From the NCBI GenBank assembly GCA_043228905.1, contig JBHGNT010000006.1, positions 6,386,001 to 6,450,000 of the forward strand: DNA of 64,000 bases. The letters are read 5' to 3'. Position numbers and translations under genes: made by a program. Below are positions 1,121 through 57,507 of the stretch, in pieces; within the stretch, counting starts at the first letter, position 1, and every line of letters starts with the position of its first letter. Under the pieces are notes generated by a model. That model did no database searches, was not told the origin of the DNA, and worked only from the letters and a program-made list of their open reading frames with translations. This DNA comes from Azolla caroliniana (Eukaryota; Plantae; Polypodiophyta).

Positions 1121-3934
1121 ATGCTCAACAAGCTCAGCGCCAAGATAGGTCGCCACAGAAGTCACGACCCCGATCAGGTTACAGAGCCGAGAGAAAGATT
1201 GATTTCCTCACATTCTATCTCAAATTCCTAAGCTGTTTCAGATTCTTCCATTTGTTTCTTTCTCTCGCGTGAATTTGGTTTAATCTGCAAAGAGAGAGAG
1301 AGAGAGAGAGAGAGGCACACACATTCACTCACAGAGATTGAGGTTTCTACACCGTCTCAGATTTGCCTTTCTTAGATATTGTTTTAATTTGCAGGATCCA
1401 TTAAGGGCTGGATTATCAGCATACTCTTTCGATCATCGCCGTTTCTCCTCAGAGAGTCCTAGATCTAATATAGCGGATGAATCAGTCCATGTGGATTCAT
1501 ACAGTGTCGGCCAAGCCTCATCCTCAGAGCATTGGGCTTCTTCATCTAGAGACTCGACATCCATCCCTGAAGAAGAAGAAGCCCTGCTTGACATTGGCAA
1601 CCCTGCCTTGCTCACTTATGAAGATGCAGAAGAACAGTTCTTAGATGAATTTGAGGACTATTTCGAGCACCTCCATGTAGATAATATTCGCAAGGAACAG
1701 TACCCAAAGCTTGACATGCAGAGGATAGCCTACTTAGACTATGCAAATTTCGCTCTTTTTTCCAAGTTTCAGGTAGGGTTGTGCGTTTTTATTGTTCATG
1801 TTATGTGAGGTCAGAGTTCAACTTTGTAGGCTTCTTAAGACTATGCAAAATCTGCTTTTTTATTTTTGCAATGTGTTGCTTATGGGAGCATGTGTGTGAT
1901 ATTTTCACAATGTTCTTTTATGAGAGAGTTCAACTCATAATATTTTATAGACCGGAATGTTGCGGAACATTAATCCAGTCAATCAAACAAGTGATTATTT
2001 TCCGGAACATGCCCATAAATCAACAAGATCTTGCCATATCAGTAGCTGGAATTTCCATCATTATAATTTTCATAACATTATCATCTTCCACAAGTCTTGG
2101 ACATTTTTTACATGATGATTCCCACGTTGCAGACTACGACCTAAATTTTAGGGATCAAGGTTTTAATCAGATATAAGCACATCACAGCTGGAAGTTTAAT
2201 GATCAGTCTTTTAATGACATGATCATCTTCTGGAATTAGTTTTGACATTTTCTCACAATAAATTCCACATCACTTTTTGGACATCATATTAGTCCAACCA
2301 CACTTAACTAGTATGCTCTACTCCTTCTGCAGAAGCTAACCATTTCGAATACTGTTAGGAAGCATGAGAGAAAGTGGGCTTTATACTCTAGTGAACTGTG
2401 GAACACACAAGTGATGCTTTATGACACCTATTTGATTACTTCAGGTAGAAGAGCATATGCGAGTACTTTTGGAAGAAGGACCAAACCTCGGCTCTGTCGC
2501 ACTCTCAAATGCTCCTTCTAGCCACCTCATGGCTTATGTCCTGGACACCCAGCATCGCCTCTTGCAAGTTCTGAATGCAGATGTTGACAAGTATTCTGTG
2601 ATATTTACAACTGGTTTTACTGCTGGTTATAGACTGTTTGGTGACATATACCCATTCCATAAGGGTAGTATTCTCTTAACATTGCTTGACAACCATGAAT
2701 CAATAAAGCATGTTATAACTTCGCTTGGTCTGCGTGGTGGGAGGTGCTATGTTGCTCCTGTGAAAGACTCTGATCTTGTAATTTCATCTAATGAGCTGAG
2801 AAGACTTCTTAAATGGAAGGAATCACGTGGTGATGAAGGTATTTTTGTTTACCCTGCACAATCCTGCTTATCAGGTATACGCCACTCTTTGAACTGGATT
2901 CAAGAGGCACAGACAAACAAATGGCAAGTCTTGCTTGATGTTTCTACGTACTTACCAACAGGTGTCTTGGATCTCTCTGTGTACAAGCCAGAGTTTGTGC
3001 TTGGTTCTTTGCATCACATGCTCGGTTATCCCTCAGGGATGGGCTTTTTACTTGTCAAGAAACAAGCCTTCACTATTGGAAAGGGTTTGCAGTCACTTAA
3101 ACTCTCAAAACCCATGAAAGATTTGGAGGAAGGAAATGATTGTCATGTTGTCAGCGAGGATGATAACATTAATCTTCTATCTTTTGCTGCACTTAGCTTC
3201 GGGTTGCTCCATCTTGAAAGCGTGGGCCTTGTACCCATACAGAAGAGAGTACTGAGTCTTGCCACTTGGCTGACACAGATGTTGAAATCGCTAAGACACA
3301 AGGATGAAGAAAAACATTTGTTACAGGTGAAATACACTCTGTCTGGATGCTTTGTCTCATCAAATTTGTATTTAGTTTCAAATTCTTGTGTTTGTTTCTT
3401 CTGGGAGGGTGGTAGAGATCAATGCAACTTAATATATATGGTACTTGTGTGTGTTCAATAACCTAATTACTTATTTGTTTGTGATGTGTTGTGTAAATTT
3501 CTATGAGAGGGTTGTGTCTTTGCGGATGGTTTAATAAATGACCTTATTTATCTAGAAATCTGATAATTCAGGTTTATGGCCTACATTCAGCCACTAACAG
3601 AGGAAATATAGTGTCTTTCAACGTGATTGACTCTACTGGGAACCTCTTTCCAGCAAGGCTAGTACAAAAATTGGCTGACAGGAGCAATATTATGGTTGGA
3701 GCTGGTTATTTTAGCAACCCTGGGTTAGTGACACTCTTGTATGAAGGGCCAAAGAAAACCCTAGATTCAAAAGTTTACAAGCGTGTATTGACCTTTTCTG
3801 TGGTAAGGGTCTCTCTTGGCCCCATGTCAACATTTGGGGATGTATATAGGCTCATACAGTTTCTCTTGCGATTTCGGGATGAAGAATATGTTTCAACTGA
3901 AGCAGTAGAATTTATAGAAGAAAATTTATTCTAG
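1121..3934 (+). CDS. NifS/molybdenum-cofactor-sulfurase-like PLP fold-type-I (aminotransferase class V) protein without MOSC domain; probable pseudoenzyme; ~559 aa, 4 exons
   Basis: Exons 1121-1177 (ATG..MLNKLSAKIGRHRSHDPDQ), 1395-1772, 2445-3326, 3572-3934; all introns GT..AG, phase 0; 1680 nt in total. Motifs: EQYPKL..AYLDYA, YSVIFTTGFTAG, DNHES, FVYPAQSCLSG, WQVLLDVS, PEFVLGSLHHMLGYPSGMGFLLV, GYFSNPG, VVRVSLG. Exon 1 is the least certain. Confidence 0.88.
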
Positions 3935-8421: not shown

Positions 8422-9495
8422 ATGATGGCCATGTTGTTGCATCTCCGGCTGGTTGCGTCGTCGTCCATGCTTCTCTTAGGCTTCCTCCTCCTCCTCCTCC
8501 TCCTGCTGGGCGGCGGCGGCGGCGGCGGACTCTTTGTGGAGGCTGGGCGGCGGCGTTCGCTCACGTGGTTTGCTGCTGGTGGAGCGCCGCCGGCTTTTTC
8601 AGCCCCCCCCACCATATGGACTCCTCCTCGTCCTCCTTCAATGCCAACGCCAACGCCAATCACCTATGGCGGCATTCCACCACCGCCACCGCCGGCCTTC
8701 GTAGCCCCTGCTCCTCCCCTTCCTCCCACTTTCGTAGCTCCCCCAACACGTCCACCCACGTACCCTCAGCCTCCTCCTCCTCCTCCTCCTCCTCCTCCTA
8801 GCCAGCCTACAGCGCCACCACCTACCTTCGTTGCTCCACCACCACCTCCTCCTCCTCCTCCTCCTCCTCCTAGCCAGCCTACAGCGCCACCACCTCCTCC
8901 TCCTACCTTCGTTGCTCCACCACCACCTCCTCCTCCTCCTCCTCCTCCTACCTTCGTTGCTCCACCACCGCCTCCTCCTCCTCCTCCTCCTACCTTCGTT
9001 GCTCCACCACCTCCTCCTATCTTCGTCGCCCCCCCCACACCACCCACAACATACGGTGGGCTTCCAACAACACCGCCACCCGCCACCTCTACCCCACCGC
9101 CCACCTTTGTAGCTCCTCCACCTCCACCACCACCCACCTTTGTAGCTCCTCCTCCTCCACCACCACCACCACCCACCTTTGTAGCTCCTCCTCCTCCTCC
9201 TCCTCCACCGCCACCCCCAACCTTTGTAGCTCCTCCTACTTTTGTGGCCCCACCGGCCCCACCCACATACAACACCGTGCCCACCAGCCCAGCTTCTCCA
9301 CCGCCACCGCCACCGCCACCGGCTTTCGTATCTCCACCGACTTTCGCAGCTCCCTCTCCACCTACCTCATCGACAACCCCTCCTCCTCCTCCTCCTCCTC
9401 CTCCTACTTTCGTAGCTCCTCCAGCAGGCAATGCTGGACCGCCCCCCACATATGGCGGCGGTAATCCTCCAACTCCCACTTGGAGAGCAACCTAG
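8422..9495 (+). CDS. Secreted proline-rich / extensin-like (HRGP) cell-wall protein, intronless, 357 aa
   Basis: ATG, hydrophobic Leu-rich signal peptide ending ..VEA-GRRRSL, then 13 FVAP units separated by poly-Pro runs and three TYGG motifs; GC-rich compared with its flanks. Confidence 0.85.
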   Translation: MMAMLLHLRLVASSSMLLLGFLLLLLLLLGGGGGGGLFVEAGRRRSLTWFAAGGAPPAFSAPPTIWTPPRPPSMPTPTPITYGGIPPPPPPAFVAPAPPLPPTFVAPPTRPPTYPQPPPPPPPPPPSQPTAPPPTFVAPPPPPPPPPPPPSQPTAPPPPPPTFVAPPPPPPPPPPPTFVAPPPPPPPPPPTFVAPPPPPIFVAPPTPPTTYGGLPTTPPPATSTPPPTFVAPPPPPPPTFVAPPPPPPPPPTFVAPPPPPPPPPPPTFVAPPTFVAPPAPPTYNTVPTSPASPPPPPPPPAFVSPPTFAAPSPPTSSTTPPPPPPPPPTFVAPPAGNAGPPPTYGGGNPPTPTWRAT

Positions 9496-16891: not shown

Positions 16892-18631
16892 TCAGCTGTC
16901 GTAGTGGAGCTGATAGTGATGTTGTTGGTTGTGATGGTGTAGATGCTCAGGATTCTTCTTGGCCAGCCCGAAGAGCCGGCGGCACGCTCGAATCATGCTA
17001 CCGGCCGCCGAAGAGGTCGTCGTGCCGAATTTCTTCTTGCTCCCTAGAGGCGGATGATTCGTAGCTGCAGGAGGAGGAGGAGGAGGGGCATGATTCCAGG
17101 CCGAGCAAGGGCAAGGGGCATGATGGGGGCAACAATGCGAGCGGCAGCATGAGGATTGGGGGCGATGGCGCAGGGGAGCTCCGCAGGTCCCGCATTCCAT
17201 GACCATGCCGATGGCTGGATCACGCAATGAGTTGGACCTTCCCAACACCATGCCGGCAGGAGGAGCTAGAGTGGCGGCAGAGTATCGAAATGCGTTCGCC
17301 CCAACTGATCTCCGAGCCGGCTCAGCCCCATACATGATCTGCCCGTCACCGCCGCCACCGCTCAGCCTGTATGGAACCCACTCATCATCACCTGCATCCT
17401 CCTCATCGATACCTCTGTAGAATGAAGAATTGCCGAAACCAGCCCCTGGGGCCTGCCTCTGTATGTTCCATGATTCATCACTGCTGTTCTGGACCCTCAT
17501 GGACTGTGACCGCATATCCACCCCTCCTGACATTGGAGGTGGGATCGGCCTGTGTTTGCTGCTTCGCTGCATCATCCTCTCGAACTCCTCCGCTTCCTCC
17601 CACCTCTGCTCACCTGGGCTCTTTACCTTCTTCGACGACCATGTGCTTCTCTTCGCACCCACAGAAACAGCTGATCCCTGCACTTTCGAGGGTAGCGCCC
17701 CTCGGGCAGGAAGCTTATTACTAATCTTCATGAATCGATCCACCTCCTCCACAGGCATCCCCTCCATATTCACTTTCTTCATCACCGTGGGAGGCAACAG
17801 CGCAGTCGCGATGGCATGGGAACTACCGTGCTCTCTCACCGTCGCCGATCGCTGAAGACCACCACCGATCACTGTCTTGGCAGAGTCTTTACGCCTGCCG
17901 CCATCGCCGCTGAGCGAGCTGTTCGTCAAAGCCTGACGAACTTCCTCCTCCCATGACGGGCGTCGGACGGGCGGCGCTGGCGCCTCCTGGTTATAGTTGC
18001 AATGCGGCTTGAAGACAGTTGAGGAAGGCTTCAACTCTACCACTGCGGCTGCGGCTGTGGCTGTGGCTGTAGCTGTGGCTATGGCTATGGCTGATTTTGT
18101 GCGATTCGAAGTCTTCTCCTCGTCGACCGCGTGATAATCTCGCATGGACAGGACTCTCTCTAGAGTGGCAGGTGCCTCACCATGTCTGGGCTTGGGGGCA
18201 GATGCAATCGCTGCAGAAGAGCTCATATCATAGCTATTACGAGCGGTGAGGCGCCGCGGATCTTCGACTTGATGCTCTCCCTTCTTAGCATGGCATAAAG
18301 CGCTAGGCATGGCGCCTCCGACCATCGACGGAAGGCTATGGTGATGGTTAGGACGATTATTAGCTTGGGTCTCAGATATTGAAATCGCTGCTACTCCGTG
18401 GCTTCCGGTTAATGGAGAATCTGGTGTACGGCCACAATCCTTGTGATGATCGCTCTGCAATTCTTCGTGATCGGCCTCTGACTCTGTACAACTACCACTG
18501 CTAGTGTTAGAGCTAGAGCTAGTGGTTGTACAGCTGGGGTGTAATCTATTATTAGCCGGCGTGCCGCTGCTGCTGCTGCTGCTCGTTGGCGCGCCGTTCA
18601 GCGCCATTCTTCCATGGCCCCAGGAAGACAT
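16892..18631 (-). CDS. Intronless 579-aa Ser/Ala/Pro-rich, largely disordered protein of unknown function
   Basis: 1740-nt ATG-initiated ORF, GC- and CpG-rich against AT-rich flanks, preceded by a GA/CT microsatellite. No recognisable folded domain; Cys/His cluster and basic-hydrophobic motif near the C-terminus. Confidence 0.8.
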   Translation of the reverse strand: MSSWGHGRMALNGAPTSSSSSSGTPANNRLHPSCTTTSSSSNTSSGSCTESEADHEELQSDHHKDCGRTPDSPLTGSHGVAAISISETQANNRPNHHHSLPSMVGGAMPSALCHAKKGEHQVEDPRRLTARNSYDMSSSAAIASAPKPRHGEAPATLERVLSMRDYHAVDEEKTSNRTKSAIAIATATATATAAAAVVELKPSSTVFKPHCNYNQEAPAPPVRRPSWEEEVRQALTNSSLSGDGGRRKDSAKTVIGGGLQRSATVREHGSSHAIATALLPPTVMKKVNMEGMPVEEVDRFMKISNKLPARGALPSKVQGSAVSVGAKRSTWSSKKVKSPGEQRWEEAEEFERMMQRSSKHRPIPPPMSGGVDMRSQSMRVQNSSDESWNIQRQAPGAGFGNSSFYRGIDEEDAGDDEWVPYRLSGGGGDGQIMYGAEPARRSVGANAFRYSAATLAPPAGMVLGRSNSLRDPAIGMVMECGTCGAPLRHRPQSSCCRSHCCPHHAPCPCSAWNHAPPPPPPAATNHPPLGSKKKFGTTTSSAAGSMIRACRRLFGLAKKNPEHLHHHNQQHHYQLHYDS

Positions 18632-26833: not shown

Positions 26834-28978
26834 ATGGGATATTTGTTACCTGCAGGATCCATGGCTACAGGGTACATTTGCCATCAGCCCACATGCTTTG
26901 TTGCCGCCGCAGCGATCACTTCTGCTACCACTACTGCAGGAGGAGTGAATCCTAGATCACATGGTGCCTCCTCCTCCTCCTCCTCCTCCTCCTCACCAGC
27001 AGAACAATCACGTGCTCTCCTACAGTTGATAAAGTCATGTGGGAAGCAAAAGAACCTGCACAAAGCTCGAAGGATACATGCACAGGTTCTCCAGACGCAG
27101 GTATTGGATCCACATGATGCTTCCTGCAGTCTCATCCCCTTCTCTCTGCTTCGAATGTACTCTGAGTGTGGGGCTGTTACAGAAGCTCAGAAAGTATTTG
27201 ATCAGCTACTCCTTCCGATGAACAACTGCGACTCTGCTGCTGCTGCATGGAGCTTGCTCATTAAGATGTATGCCCAGCATGGCCATGGTGAGATAGCTTT
27301 GCAATGCTTCAAGAAGATGCAAAATGAGAATTTACGACCTGATGCATCCACGTTTGCATTTGCCCTCAAAGCTTGTCGTATCACAAGATCTCTCAATGTC
27401 GCTGAAGAGATTCACGTGGAGGTACACAAGCGTGGCTTATTGAAGAAAAATATTGTGCTTGGCACAGTGTTAATGGACATTTATGCCAAATGTGGTGTAA
27501 TTGGAAAAGCACGGGAAGTTTTTGAAGAGCTCCCTGTGAGAGACGTTGTATCTTGGAGTGTTCTGATTACGGGGTATGCTCAATGTGGTCTCAATGATGA
27601 AGCGCTGAAGTGCTTCCAGACAATGCAAGACGAGGGCATTTCTCCGGATGCGATAACATTTGCATGCATTCTTAAAGCGTGCAGTAGTATAGGGTATATT
27701 CACATAGGAGAGGAGATACATTGTGAGATCAGGAAGCAAGGTTTATTAAAGAAAAACACCATCCTCAGCACAACATTAGCAGACATGTACATGAAGTGTG
27801 GCATGCTGGGAAAAGCACAAGAAGTTTTTGATGAGCTTCTCATACGAGATGTGGTGTCTTGGAGTGCTATGATGGCTGGTTATAGCGAGCATGATCGTGC
27901 TGAGGAAGCTCTGGTATGTTTCCAACGTATGCAGAATGAGGGCATCCTACCTGATGCATTCAGCTTTGCATGCATTTTGCAAGCTTGCAGCAGGATAGGA
28001 TATATTGACGTAGGAAAACGGATACATGCTGAGGTAAGGATGGTGGGGTTGCTAAAGAAGAACTCAGTGCTTGGCACAACATTAGTGGATATGTATGCCA
28101 AGTGTGGTTGTCTAGGGAAAGCACAGGAAGCATTTGATGAGCTTCAGACACAGGATGTGGTATCTTGGAGTGCACTCATGAATGCTTATATTCAACATGG
28201 CTTTTCCGAGGAAGCTCTAAACTGCTTTCGGAAGATGCGAAAAGAGGGTATCGTCCCGAATGTCATCACATTCACTAGTGCTCTGAAAGCCTGCGGCAAT
28301 ATAGGATCCCTTGAAGTAGGAGAAGAGATACACAACAAGATAAGGGAGCAGAGTTTACTTGAAACAGAAGTAATGCTCGGCATCACATTGATGGACATGT
28401 ATGCGAAGTGTGGTGTGCTAACGAAAGCTCGACAAGTGTTCGAAAAGATTCCTGTACAGGATGTTGTGTCTTGGAATGCCCTCTTGGCTGGGCATACTCA
28501 ACTAGGACATGCAACACATGTATTGATGTTATTCAGTGAAATGGTATCAGAGGGTATTATGCCTGATTTGGTCACTTTTGTTTCCCTGCTAGCTGCATGC
28601 AGTCATGCTGGGCTACTCGAAGAAGGGACAAAGGTCTTTGCTTGTATGTCTAGCGTCTACAATATCCTTCCAACTTTAGAACACTACACATGCCTGGTTG
28701 ATCTTTTCAGTCGAGCAGGACACTTGGATAAATCTGTAGTTCTATGTGAAAGCTTGTCATCATCTGAGAGGCTTCCACTGTTGCTTTCAGTCTTGAGTGC
28801 TTGTCAGAAATGGATGAATGTGGATCTTGGGAGGTGGGCCTTTGAACAATGTTTGCAGCTGGACAGAACATGTGCTGCTGCATATGTGTTCATGGGAAAT
28901 ATATATATAGCTGCCGACATGCATGGGGAAGCTGACCGGATAAATTGTCTGAGGGTGTCAAATAAAGAAATCATATGA
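26834..28978 (+). CDS. PLS-class pentatricopeptide-repeat protein, E subgroup (no DYW); organellar RNA-editing specificity factor, 714 aa
   Basis: Ser/Thr/Ala-rich N-terminal targeting-like peptide, then L-S-(P-L-S)x4-P2-L2-S2-E1-E2 (e.g. VVSWSVLITGYAQCG, AITFACILKAC, LGTTLVDMYAKCG, TFVSLLAACSHAG, EHYTCLVDLFSRAG, AAYVFMGNIY). Stop right after E2; intronless CDS. Confidence 0.95.
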   Translation: MGYLLPAGSMATGYICHQPTCFVAAAAITSATTTAGGVNPRSHGASSSSSSSSSPAEQSRALLQLIKSCGKQKNLHKARRIHAQVLQTQVLDPHDASCSLIPFSLLRMYSECGAVTEAQKVFDQLLLPMNNCDSAAAAWSLLIKMYAQHGHGEIALQCFKKMQNENLRPDASTFAFALKACRITRSLNVAEEIHVEVHKRGLLKKNIVLGTVLMDIYAKCGVIGKAREVFEELPVRDVVSWSVLITGYAQCGLNDEALKCFQTMQDEGISPDAITFACILKACSSIGYIHIGEEIHCEIRKQGLLKKNTILSTTLADMYMKCGMLGKAQEVFDELLIRDVVSWSAMMAGYSEHDRAEEALVCFQRMQNEGILPDAFSFACILQACSRIGYIDVGKRIHAEVRMVGLLKKNSVLGTTLVDMYAKCGCLGKAQEAFDELQTQDVVSWSALMNAYIQHGFSEEALNCFRKMRKEGIVPNVITFTSALKACGNIGSLEVGEEIHNKIREQSLLETEVMLGITLMDMYAKCGVLTKARQVFEKIPVQDVVSWNALLAGHTQLGHATHVLMLFSEMVSEGIMPDLVTFVSLLAACSHAGLLEEGTKVFACMSSVYNILPTLEHYTCLVDLFSRAGHLDKSVVLCESLSSSERLPLLLSVLSACQKWMNVDLGRWAFEQCLQLDRTCAAAYVFMGNIYIAADMHGEADRINCLRVSNKEII

Positions 28979-29555
28979 GATTCTCTGTGAGATTGAGTTG
29001 TGAATCCATATAGAAGCTTCTTAGTTCATTGGGTTCTCATTTTGAACTTGCACCGCTAGATCTGTTTACAAAATACGGAGTTTGTTACACATAAGGTAAA
29101 GTAAAATATTTAACTAATTGTGATAACTTTATTTCCTAAAGATTTCTTTCTGGATTGGAAATGAAATATTGCATTTCTGTTTGTTTGGATGTGCATGGCA
29201 ATTTATTTTTATTTCAGTTTACTTTTCTTTGATTGTTCTTACTTTTTATTGTCCTTTTTCCAGGAATTGTATGGTTGACATATTTGTTCTGTCTTTAAAT
29301 GCTACCCTGAAGCTGAATGCGGAACCTATATAGTCCAAGCTTTACAACGAAACATTGCATCTGGACAAAATAGTTGAGGAAATTTGCTATGGACATGACT
29401 CTAAAAAGCACTCCTTGGGCGCCCATGTCAGGTACAAATTATGGTATCAATACAAGCTCTTTTCTTAATAATTTGTAAACCTATACAACTTCTCTTTACA
29501 CCCTACTTTGGTATAGTTTTTCTTTCTTTACTTTCATTAATTTCCCCTGTTGGTA

Positions 29556-29751
29556 GTCAAAGGACCAACTCTATCACAAAATTGTGATCTATCATTGTAC
29601 ACAGTGCCAATGAAGCTTCTTATTGCATTATAGTTTGTTCATCTATCTCCTGTCTTGATTTCAACTTTTAGTTGTCAAATGACCAACTCTACTTCACAAA
29701 GCTGTCATGTATCATTGTATACGGTGCCAGTGAAGCTTCTTATTACATTAT
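29556..29751. repeat. Degenerate direct repeat (~76 bp x2)
   Basis: GTCAAA.GACCAACTCTA...GTGCCA.TGAAGCTTCTTATT.CATTATA at ~29556-29631 and ~29674-29751. Confidence 0.75.
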
Positions 29752-29953
29752 ACTTTATGCATTCAGAAAACTCTTGAAACATTACAAGTATCATGTACCT
29801 TTCACCTTTCTCTTGAACATCTATAAATATTCTAAGACCTTGTCTGTATTTTCTTTGAGACAATTATAGAAGGCCCCTACACCAATTATGTATAAATTCT
29901 TGTGCGCCAAATATGCTTGGCTTCTTCAAGTTGGTGGAAAATGTTTCATGCAA

Positions 29954-30224
29954 CATCACCCTCAAAGTATAAACCTCATGATCGATGAGGTTGTCATATT
30001 TGATAACAATCCAGGGTTGCAGTTGCAATGTAAAATAAAAAATTGACATGAGTATCTCATGGATGTGTAAAACAGAATTCATGGTTATAAATCAAATATG
30101 GGAACAGTATACATATTCATGGTTATAAATTGTCATGGATGTATCATGATTGTGGCAAGGGTGAATCATAGATATTCATATATGGTAAATTCCTTGTCAT
30201 GAGGTTTATGCATTGAGGGTGATG
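29954..30224. repeat. Inverted repeat (28-bp arms, 26/28 identity), possible old MITE or fold-back
   Basis: CATCACCCTCAAAGTATAAACCTCATGA (29954-29981) versus TCATGAGGTTTATGCATTGAGGGTGATG (30197-30224). Confidence 0.7.
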
Positions 30225-31324
30225 ATGTTCATGAAGAAGGACCTATATATAATTAGATCAAACATCCTTACCAAGAATAGCCTTACTACCTTAAGTAGTC
30301 ATTTTGCCGTAAAGGTTCAATGGTTTAGAATGTACTTGGAATATGGATCCTAAATTTAAGGAGATAAGCAAATGCACGCCTCCCATGGTGTCCCTAGCTT
30401 TTTATATAGACTTCTTGATAAGGTCATGAAAGAGGGACGACATTCTTGAGCTATTCTGTTTATCTTAATTAAATGAGTTGGCCTCTTATCAACTAAGTAA
30501 TTAATTGGTTGTGTATTTATGAGCCATTTTGTTGCTTATAACACTTGCCTTATTTGAATCACGTCAGTCTCGGCTTTGTACTAATACTACAACTTGCTTT
30601 AGTTGTCTAGCCATCACGACTGGCAATGTACATCATAATCCATGGCAACTGCAATGAGCTGTTCATAGCCATCACAATCAGTCACCTATACCATTATACG
30701 TGGCAATCGCAATGAGTTGCTCAGTCCACAATATATGAATGTAATGCATGTCATATGATCATGGTAATTCAACATCAGCCTCTGGCAAGTATTGACTTTA
30801 TGCCAATTCATGAACACAAATGCAATATGAAGTAACCCAAAACCCAATCAATAGATGGAGCTTTAGTGCAACTTTATATGCCCACTATCAAGGGCCCAAG
30901 CACAAGACCAATTGAATTAGAAATGGAAACTAAAAAGAAGTAATTTTATTCTAAACAAGATGAACCAAATTATTGCAAAGATTTGAATTGAACCAAAATG
31001 GTTTGACAAACTTATCACCCTAGACCTATGCATGATTGCCATAAGCATCAATGCATACTTACCACATAGTGTCGATGTATGCTTGCCACTTGGTTATCTT
31101 GCATGTTCCAAACTTGGCTATCTTGTGTAATTATGTTTCCGTGTTTTTTCTCAAGGTCAACACCAGTTATTCAGTGTACTTGGTTCTTGCTTTATCTAAT
31201 TCTAGTCACATCTCTTCACTACTCATACGTCTCATTTTGTATCTTTTTGTGTCTTTTTTATCCTTTCCTGAATCCCTGATCTTGCTGTATGTTGTCTAAC
31301 AACCATAACAATTTGACCTTGAAT

Positions 31325-31555
31325 ATGGCGTACCTTAATCAAATTATGGCGGTTCTTCATCACTTACAATTGGAAAATGCTATGCTTCGTGAATCCTTGC
31401 ATGAGCTTCACTCTTCCTCCATAGCTTGGTGGAGCCTCTCTTTATGGAGCTAAGAGTTAGCTTACTCGAGAAATTCAATGGCAATTGGGATTGTCATATA
31501 TGGGGATTGATCAACCAAGTCCAACTCATCATCTGTCTCCAACTCCAACGATAAT
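31325..31555 (+). mobile_element. Ty3/gypsy (chromovirus-type) gag N-terminal relic
   Basis: MAYLNQIMAVLHHLQLENAMLRESL..ELRVSLLEKFNGN..GLINQVQLII resembles the coiled-coil plus 'EP.ISLPEKFDG..RGFLNQ..L' start of chromoviral gag. Confidence 0.55.
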
Positions 31556-32152
31556 AATTTCAAGCTGTGAGTGGGTCTTGTCAATGTAGTCTCACTAAGA
31601 GGGGCGATGCGGGTTTGGTTGAATTGAGTTTCCCCAAAGTGGCCAACATGACTCATGCTTTGATGTGTTGCACTATCAAGGGTCACTACCAAGTCCAAAG
31701 GGGTCGTCTTCCGTACTGTGGGTTAACTGAAGGATTAAAAACTTCACGTCTTAATGGCTGCAAAGACCACGTCATACTTCAACACATAAAAGTACTTACC
31801 CCTAGACTCCATGCAATGAATTGAGTTTCCCCAAAGTGACAACCACCGTACAAAAGGCATGTTTTTTGCACTTCTGAGGGTCAATCTCAAGTTTGGAGGG
31901 GTCTCCTTCCTGTCTCCTTCCTAACTACAGTAGCATGATTGAAGAACAATGGAGACGTTACTCCCCAATAACAAAGACTGCATTATTAAATCACTTACTC
32001 TCAACTCCATGCAATTGTGGAAGCCTCAAACTTTTCTTAAGTTAAAACTAACATTAACACACCTAATCACTATATCAATTAAGGGATATGTTGCCTTTAT
32101 TAAATGTATAGTAAAACATACAATGTTATTAATAAATCAGATAATGCTAAAT

Positions 32153-32248
32153 AAAAAACATGTATATCTTAATTAATTAGTTTGAAAAAACATGTATATC
32201 TTAATTAATTAGTTTGAAAAAACATGTATATCTTAATTAATTAGTTTC
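32153..32248. repeat. 32-bp tandem repeat x3
   Basis: AAAAAACATGTATATCTTAATTAATTAGTTTG repeated three times. Confidence 0.9.
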
Positions 32249-32473
32249 GAAAAGTGGTTCTTTGTGGGTGCAAAAGGTAGAGAATGAGGACAAGAAGGTA
32301 ATCCTAGAGTTTGGAAACTGTAGACCATTTTTACATGAGAGCTCTTGCCATTTTATACAAATTGGAAACCGTAAAGGGTTCCTTTCACATTATAAGCCCA
32401 TTGGGCATTGGCCATTGCCACATAGTAAAGGGTAGTTCTTCACAAATTATAATATGTCCATGTTTCTTGTATA

Positions 32474-32914
32474 TGTTGGGCTGGCTATGGGCCTTGGTTG
32501 GACTCAACCAAACTAAATTGTTACAAAGTCATGGTTGAACGGTTTACTGGTTCGAATATAATGAAGCAGTTTGGTTTGGTTCTAAAATTGGGGGTTATCA
32601 GTTTATTGATTTAAGTGGCTCAGTTTAATGATTTATTGGTTTTTTGTTTACCTTTTTTGTTTCTGTAATTGTTTAATGGTTTAGTTAGTGGTGTTTTTTG
32701 TTTAATTAATTTAATTTTTGAATTTAGTAGTTGTTTTATTTAATGGATTTTTTGGTTTAATTATTTAATTAATTTGACTTAAATTTCATCTTTTCTTTAA
32801 ATGGCTTGGTAGTTCTTAAACGGGCTGGTTTGGGTTTCTTTTTGCATGAATGGTTCAGTTGGGTTTCATTGGCTTTAAAGCTGAACTGAACTTAGCCCAG
32901 TATCTACTTGGCCT
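32474..32914 (-). mobile_element. MITE-like element, copy B (inverted relative to copy A at 24.4-25.0 kb)
   Basis: AAAGTCATGGTTGAACGGTTTACTGGTTCGAATA..AGTTTGGTT matches the reverse complement of copy A; T-rich GGTTT-motif interior. Boundaries approximate. Confidence 0.55.
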
Positions 32915-34038
32915 ATGACCAATATTCTAGATTGGAAATATTAAGCCTCATAGGGTGGTTAGGATGAAAGAATGTGACATTATTTCCCTTAACATCCCCC
33001 CACACCTATTTGGGTACTCTATCCACAAAGAACATCCACAAACTCTGGTAGTTGAATCTCAAAATTTTGCAAGATGCCACGTTAACATCTTTTTTCATGT
33101 TACATTTGTAGAGAGGTTGTTGAGATTCAATAATATTGACGAATTAGGAAACTTAGAAGTGCTTTTATCATGAGAATAAATATCTGTTTGAAAAATTTAC
33201 GGCTATGTCCTGGACCTCCTCCATACAAACATAAATGATTTAATTGACATCATAATTGCTTTTCGAGATTGTCAAGAATGCAAAGTGCATTTTACTTGGA
33301 AAAGGATTGAGCCTTCCACCCAAAGATAAAACACATACAAGATCAACATCACTTTGTTGATCATGAGAAGGTCCAAGAAGGATGTGTGACCATACTAAGC
33401 GCAACCATGGCTGATATGTAAAGAAAGTTGTTAAATAAATGCTAGTTTATATGATGTAGATCTAACCTAGCAAAAAATGAAAGCAATATGAAGATCACAA
33501 ATGTAGAAACATACAATGATCTGATGTCAAACGGGACCTATGTGGTGATGCCACTTGTGAACTTGCACAATACAATGAATTGGATTTGTGAATAGAGGAG
33601 TTGTACAAGAGAGAGGTATGTCGTGGGGAGTAATTTCTCATTGGCATAGTCGCAATTGGGATGGCCACATCATCATATATAATAGGCATCATTGTGTAGA
33701 TATGTATGTGTGTATGTTGTATGTATGTTGTATGTATGTATGGAGGCTGCCCACATTATCATAAAGATGCATGCGTGTATATTGAATGTATGTATGGAGG
33801 CTGCTCCATCAAATATCTGTACACTTTATTCTATGAATCGAACATTCTGAGAGCATTATAATTATATAATCTAGAATGATGTGCCAATCGTAGCCCAATG
33901 TGCTGACGTGAGTGGGAGTGGATTCAGTGGAAGTGGAATAATACCCTGCTGCTTTAACAGAGCATTACATCCATGAATGACCTAATTGCTTATAAACAGA
34001 GAAGACGAAAAGAAATGAGAATGAGAAGTTTCATTCAT

Positions 34039-55076: not shown

Positions 55077-57507
<2,431 letters not shown>

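Follow-up and report, generated by a model that had tools for sequence, protein, structure and literature searches.

Architecture of the PPR gene

The 64-kb window, by which we mean the whole stretch of DNA that was analysed, carries on its forward strand one intact open reading frame (ORF) at 26834-28978, which encodes 714 amino acids plus a stop codon in a single exon with no internal stops; an in-frame stop lies five codons 5′ of the ATG at 26834. Pfam matched the 714-aa protein to PPR families along its whole length, with E-values from 1e-30 to 1e-77 (PPR_2, 2e-77; PPR, 2e-70), and reported a weak E_motif match at aa 661-703 (1.8e-4; 22 bits, under the 27.3 cut-off). The exact protein has no record in public assemblies or contigs. 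Searches of the 64-kb window for other PPR-like sequence and for NUMTs or other organelle-derived DNA found none, and a search of the window against Rfam gave no match.

We set the motif borders by manual segmentation with sequence anchors, which resolved five P-L-S triplets with motifs of 35, 36 and 31 aa, the S2 motif being 32 aa long. An N-terminal extension of 60 aa (26834-27013, forward strand, as are all segments of the gene), which by its composition is a putative organellar presequence and includes a run of nine Ser, is followed at aa 61-135 (27014-27238) by a degenerate L-like and a degenerate S-like motif. These two motifs match the triplet HMM in part, have non-canonical specificity residues (fifth residues L and F/P) and were absent from the motif list of the initial annotation. 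Four P1-L1-S1 triplets then occupy aa 136-543, of which the first three (aa 136-441; 27239-28156) share one set of specificity residues and the fourth (28157-28462) carries another. P2-L2-S2 follows at aa 544-646 (28463-28771), and the protein is completed by E1 (aa 647-680; 28772-28873) and E2 (aa 681-714; 28874-28975). The region 28772-28975, in which the weak Pfam match lies, can be aligned to E1 and E2 of DYW-bearing relatives, and the stop codon that comes next stands at the point where a DYW domain would begin. With its alternation of P, L and S motifs, and with P2-L2-S2 followed by E1 and E2, the protein belongs to the PLS class.

The first 60 residues include 13 Ser, 6 Thr and 10 Ala, with 2 Arg, no Lys and 1 acidic residue. 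An N-terminus that is rich in Ser and Thr and poor in Arg is plastid-transit-like rather than typical of a mitochondrial presequence, and by this composition heuristic a plastid transit peptide is a better match for the N-terminus of the 714-aa protein than is a mitochondrial presequence.

Absence of a deaminase domain and relationship to other fern PPR proteins

The stop codon directly 3′ of E2 leaves the protein without the HxE and CxxCH deaminase signatures of a PPR-DYW enzyme and, having no DYW domain, the 714-aa protein cannot deaminate alone. When four canonical DYW tails were used in tblastn against 28700-33000, only the E1/E2 part inside the ORF was matched, and the 4 kb past the ORF end (28979-33000, forward strand) contained no DYW remnant detectable at E < 0.5. 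A frameshifted DYW start, suspected by eye in the bases 3′ of the stop, was rejected after receiving no tblastn support.

The top-ranking matches to the protein were Adiantum and Ceratopteris PPR proteins, whose identity reached just 42-48%. Nearly all of the relatives closest over S2-E1-E2 stop 0-20 aa past E2, and over this region the identity to the DYW-less fern relatives was 46-61%. These DYW-less PLS-E2 proteins (hypothetical proteins of Adiantum capillus-veneris and Ceratopteris richardii, with P0030, P0241 and P0289 as examples from ENA/JGI contigs) have the same P1-L1-S1, P2-L2-S2, E1 and E2 layout and the same stop point as the query, but they differ from it in their specificity residues, and among the relatives listed the G-n-G-G-n-G run described below was absent save in P0249. 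Similarly, no ortholog with the G-rich code was found in Adiantum or Ceratopteris among the matches listed, where the best C-terminal identities were 49-52% and the codes were different. The query is a further member of the known, large fern class of deaminase-less PLS-E2 PPR proteins; ferns have hundreds of PLS-PPR genes that lack a deaminase domain. The nearest DYW-bearing relatives by S2-E1-E2, P0093 (from Adiantum) and P0259, carry a QPG-type (PG-type) box, HxE and CxxCH, which argues for a derivation of the clade from the C-to-U type, and on the same sequences a KP (U-to-C) origin of the DYW-less clade appears unlikely.

Recognition residues and the predicted target

Our own segmentation gave fifth/last residues of S/D, A/N and T/D in each of the first three P1-L1-S1 triplets, S/N, T/E and I/D in the fourth, and N/D, V/T and T/R in P2-L2-S2, a list identical to that of the initial annotation, from which our segmentation was independent. 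The rules that had been applied to it (T/S+D for G, T/S+N for A, N+D for U, and S2 at -4) are those published: the PPR code, which concerns P and S motifs only, reads T/S+N as A, T/S+D as G, N+D as U, N+S as C and N+N as Y, and the terminal S2 is juxtaposed with position -4 of the edited base (PMC10482289). Under this code triplets 1-3 read G-n-G at -18 to -16, -15 to -13 and -12 to -10, the S/N of the fourth triplet reads A at -9, and the N/D of P2 reads U in preference to C at -6, so that the target string proposed earlier, G-n-G-G-n-G-G-n-G-A-n-n-Y, follows from the observed residues. That string had also been continued to an R at -4, opposite the T/R of S2, and here it is weak: S2 motifs seldom match their nucleotide canonically (PMC10482289), so the R is not dependable. 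The robust part of the prediction thus comprises G at -18, -16, -15, -13, -12 and -10, A at -9 and U>C at -6. The code is unusually clean, as six motifs read G, one reads A and one reads U.

The three-nucleotide spacing of the target is the P-L-S periodicity, and at a site in codon position 2 it places the non-specific L motifs on wobble bases. We read the same positions with the triplet HMM in 232 fern and land-plant relatives, taken from the matches listed in two protein searches. In these listed relatives S/D was found in 94 of 1700 P motifs and T/D in 187 of 1708 S motifs, and a G-n-G-G-n-G run that continues with G or A, P and S positions both fitting, was confined to the query and P0249. 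A recent internal duplication was considered as the source of the G run and rejected; the P1-L1-S1 triplets are 49-64% identical to each other as protein, and at third codon positions their identity is only 0.41-0.54.

Conservation of the code in a diverged ortholog

P0249 was found by a repeat of the protein search scored on aa 544-714 only. It is the 503-aa product of locus L121 on a 3-kb contig (Ga0494072_003334, JGI sample 3300047537), matches aa 208-698 of the query colinearly with 66% identity, and likewise ends inside E2 without a DYW domain. As the contig is truncated 5′, the comparison of residues starts at S1 of triplet 1, with the first P1-L1 pair outside it. Within this range the two proteins agree at all 18 specificity positions of the P and S motifs that they share (those of S1 in triplet 1, of triplets 2 and 3, and of the S/N, I/D, N/D and T/R motifs), including the non-canonical I/D of S1 and T/R of S2. 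By contrast, 4 of the 8 L-motif specificity residues have changed, among them the fifth residue of L1 in the fourth triplet (T to A) and the last residue of L2 (T to S). Retention of the P and S residues alongside change in the L motifs is the pattern expected if the P and S motifs read bases and the L motifs do not, and it argues that the G-rich specificity is under selection. Since the code is clean and is conserved in a diverged ortholog, the list of candidate targets in any fern organelle genome should be very short.

Over 491 aligned codons, the Nei-Gojobori method gave a dN of 0.21 and a dS of about 1.9 between the query and P0249 (dN/dS 0.11), which indicates an old split and strong purifying selection. 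This ratio rules out a pseudogene, and by this measure 26834-28978 is a functional gene under purifying selection. Because P0249 also ends within E2, the loss of the DYW domain is older than the split between the two proteins.

The two sequences differ upstream of the first shared S1, where the frame of P0249 holds a Pro/Ser repeat in place of a P1-L1 pair. The start of the contig (L121:1-100) is a CCATCG microsatellite, and the Pro/Ser repeat that it encodes in frame leads straight into the last part of an L motif. Such a Pro/Ser start might reflect a shorter array, a chimeric assembly or a presequence of an unusual kind.

Proposed mode of action

The intact ORF, the order of its motifs, the recognition residues with their retention in P0249 and the lack of a DYW domain are observed; import into an organelle, a function in editing and a partner in trans are what we infer. 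The 714-aa protein would enter the organelle, where its P and S motifs would contact a stretch of single-stranded RNA that reads G-n-G-G-n-G-G-n-G-A-n-n-(U/C); it would then mark a C-to-U site 4 nt downstream of the S2 contact, and a DYW deaminase would be supplied in trans by another protein. We consider it probable that this is a functional nuclear fern gene for a DYW-less PLS-E2 protein that binds G-rich organellar RNA, most likely as the site-recognition subunit for a C-to-U edit made with a DYW domain in trans.

In having a PLS array with E1/E2 and no deaminase, and in recognising a site without catalysis, such a protein would resemble the angiosperm E/E+ factors, some of which need a DYW protein in trans: CRR4 acts with DYW1, and CLB19 and SLO2 act with DYW2. 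The angiosperm complexes include MORF/RIP proteins, a family restricted to seed plants (PMC13386178), whereas the partner of the fern clade is a proposed one. Since ferns have none of the MORF proteins by which such complexes are assisted in seed plants (PMC13386178), the angiosperm trans model may not transfer. Physcomitrium PPR56 (PMC10482289) follows the same motif grammar, code rules and -4 register as the query; however, it has an active DYW domain of its own and edits alone in E. coli, whereas the query has no DYW domain.

Candidate targets of the G-rich code

The initial annotation had proposed that the target is most likely mitochondrial cox1, where a C-to-U edit of the second base in the Leu codon of DPAGGGDPIL would change Ser or Pro to Leu. 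The codon arithmetic behind this proposal is correct: in GGN GGN GGN GAY CCN ATH YTN, position 0 coincides with the second base of the Leu codon and the L motifs fall on wobble bases, and in cox1 GGGDPI-Leu the six Gs and the A of the pattern lie on codon positions 1 and 2. We obtained cox1 loci from metagenome contigs by means of a degenerate pattern, retained 17 land-plant mitochondrial loci (121 kb), and scanned both strands (242 kb) for the nine informative positions together with C or T at position 0. All nine positions were matched 17 times, once per locus and always at cox1 GGGDPI-Leu, and nowhere else in the 121 kb on either strand, while there were 40 matches at eight of nine positions, many of them one repeated sequence. 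The core G.GG.GG.GA occurred 34 times, 17 times at the cox1 site and 17 times elsewhere over the 242 kb. Extrapolated from these counts, organelle DNA would hold about 70 core matches per Mb, a handful of them with C at position 0, so that the code alone does not single out cox1 genome-wide.

The reading to which we give the most weight, at nearly an even chance, is that the protein is a recognition factor for another organellar editing site, which might be plastid or mitochondrial, in another frame (e.g. GnG GnG GnG) or non-coding, and would lie outside the scanned sequence. The 17 core matches away from cox1 indicate that G-rich stretches are not rare outside genes in plant mtDNA, the presequence is plastid-like, and editing sites in ferns number in the thousands, with 1618 in Haplopteris mitochondria as an example (PMC10027690). 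On the other hand, no concrete alternative was found in the 121 kb of land-plant mtDNA scanned, and plastid psbC (PGGGDVRK) would present a non-editable A at position 0, an objection that had been raised at the outset and with which we agree by codon logic. For the rpl2 motifs GGGEGR and GGGHKR, codon arithmetic gives a fit to at most about 7 of the 9 positions.

Of the candidates found, the cox1 GGGDPI-Leu codon has the best fit by sequence, although as the actual target it is doubtful and another organellar site is rated likelier. In its favour are the full match in 17 of 17 land-plant loci and the half of all core matches that fall on it. Further support comes from a protein search that started from the translated plant COX1 of one locus among the 17, in which the 120 best proteins were compared: two of the 120, from the liverworts Pellia epiphylla (P0239) and Cyathodium cavernarum (P0195), have DPIS for DPIL, and the other listed COX1 proteins with the motif have DPIL or DPVL. 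Both DPIS entries look like translations of genomic DNA before editing, which would mean that Ser-to-Leu editing of this codon does occur naturally, in these two liverworts. The base concerned is nt 701 in Pellia numbering.

The DPIS in the COX1 of Cyathodium implies an edit; Cyathodium is a complex thalloid liverwort, and this group is reported to lack RNA editing (PMC5295000).

Against cox1, position 0 is T in all 17 of the land-plant loci read, and the available fern sequences already have, or do not edit, the Leu codon. Among the database matches fern COX1 is represented only by Psilotum and Haplopteris ensiformis, the latter in edit-corrected form. The Psilotum entry is a genomic translation with many unedited residues nearby, and it has Leu at the DPI-Leu codon. 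In Haplopteris the Leu is residue 248 (nt 743), and none of the 145 cox1 edits of the editome lies at nt 743 or anywhere between nt 714 and 748, cox1eU714FF being followed by cox1eC748*Q (PMC10027690, Supplementary Data 2). The genomic cox1 ORFs of leptosporangiate ferns are probably broken by stops that need U-to-C editing, and the protein-database route is consequently blind to them. Haplopteris, Adiantum and Ceratopteris all belong to the Pteridaceae, and the cox1 reading would expect the edit and the factor to be missing together there, as they are (the edit in Haplopteris; the ortholog in Adiantum and Ceratopteris, among the matches listed); this co-absence is compatible with cox1 as the target but adds little support.

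Several properties of the protein and its code also count against cox1. The N/D at -6 prefers U, whereas cox1 has C; the Ser/Thr-rich N-terminus with its 2 Arg is unlike a typical mitochondrial presequence; the extrapolated density of about 70 core matches per Mb leads us to expect further candidates; and a protein without DYW could not carry out the deamination itself. Full-text literature searches gave no match for a fern edit at the cox1 GGGDPI-Leu codon, a monilophyte-wide editing survey did not include cox1, and the Blechnopsis mitogenome paper contains no site list. The pattern with the unedited YCN codon had no match in bacterial and viral contig collections, where plant mtDNA is not expected. 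Of the original proposal, then, the unique nine-position match in the scanned mtDNA and the existence of a Ser codon in two liverworts are borne out, whereas "most likely" is too strong in view of the T in 17 of 17 loci, the Leu of Psilotum and the unedited codon of Haplopteris.

One of the metagenome contigs (L118) carries a plant cox1 with an intact frame of 527 codons and 34 T-to-C differences from a Brassicaceae-like cox1, in which several residues look unedited (e.g. DRSFN). Its source is probably a plant with many edits but no stop codons that depend on reverse editing.

It is also possible, though we think it improbable, that the protein binds RNA outside editing, in the stabilisation, processing or translation of a G-tract transcript, or that it is an orphan factor kept after its site was lost by a genomic C-to-T change. 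Either would suit a protein with neither a deaminase nor a downstream remnant of one, whose array has stayed strongly constrained although the DYW loss predates the ortholog split, and whose best match, the cox1 site, is T in the ferns with data (Psilotum and Haplopteris). However, E1 and E2, which in known E-class factors are tied to editing, are retained and conserved, and the same truncation point is found across a whole fern clade, as would suit a common mode of action better than decay.

Implications for deaminase-less fern PPR proteins

What the present analysis adds is the conservation of the P and S code in P0249 and the end of the protein at the E2/DYW border with no deaminase remnant. 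We know of no factor-site pair for the deaminase-less PLS-PPR proteins of ferns. It seems unlikely that every element of the most specific scenario holds, namely that an ancient DYW-less PLS-E2 protein and a trans deaminase specify the Ser-to-Leu edit at cox1 DPAGGGDPI-Leu, in a fern lineage outside the Pteridaceae and with no MORF protein; if it were true, it would provide a defined factor-site pair for how this class of fern PPR proteins edits. The protein in any case lends itself well to tests of how fern PPR proteins without DYW act, and is otherwise an ordinary member of a very large family.

Other features of the window

Two long ORFs, one of 357 aa at 8422-9495 on the forward strand and one of 579 aa at 16892-18631 on the reverse strand, have no Pfam match; the stretches in which they lie, with a G+C content of 0.55 and 0.50, are the only ones in the window that are rich in G+C. 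A 334-aa ORF at 2457-3461 on the forward strand has a weak match to class-V aminotransferases (NifS-like). On the reverse strand, the last 100 residues of the ORF at 56968-57507 correspond to the start of class-II DAHP synthase (E 2e-36), and this ORF probably represents exon 1 of a gene in the shikimate pathway.
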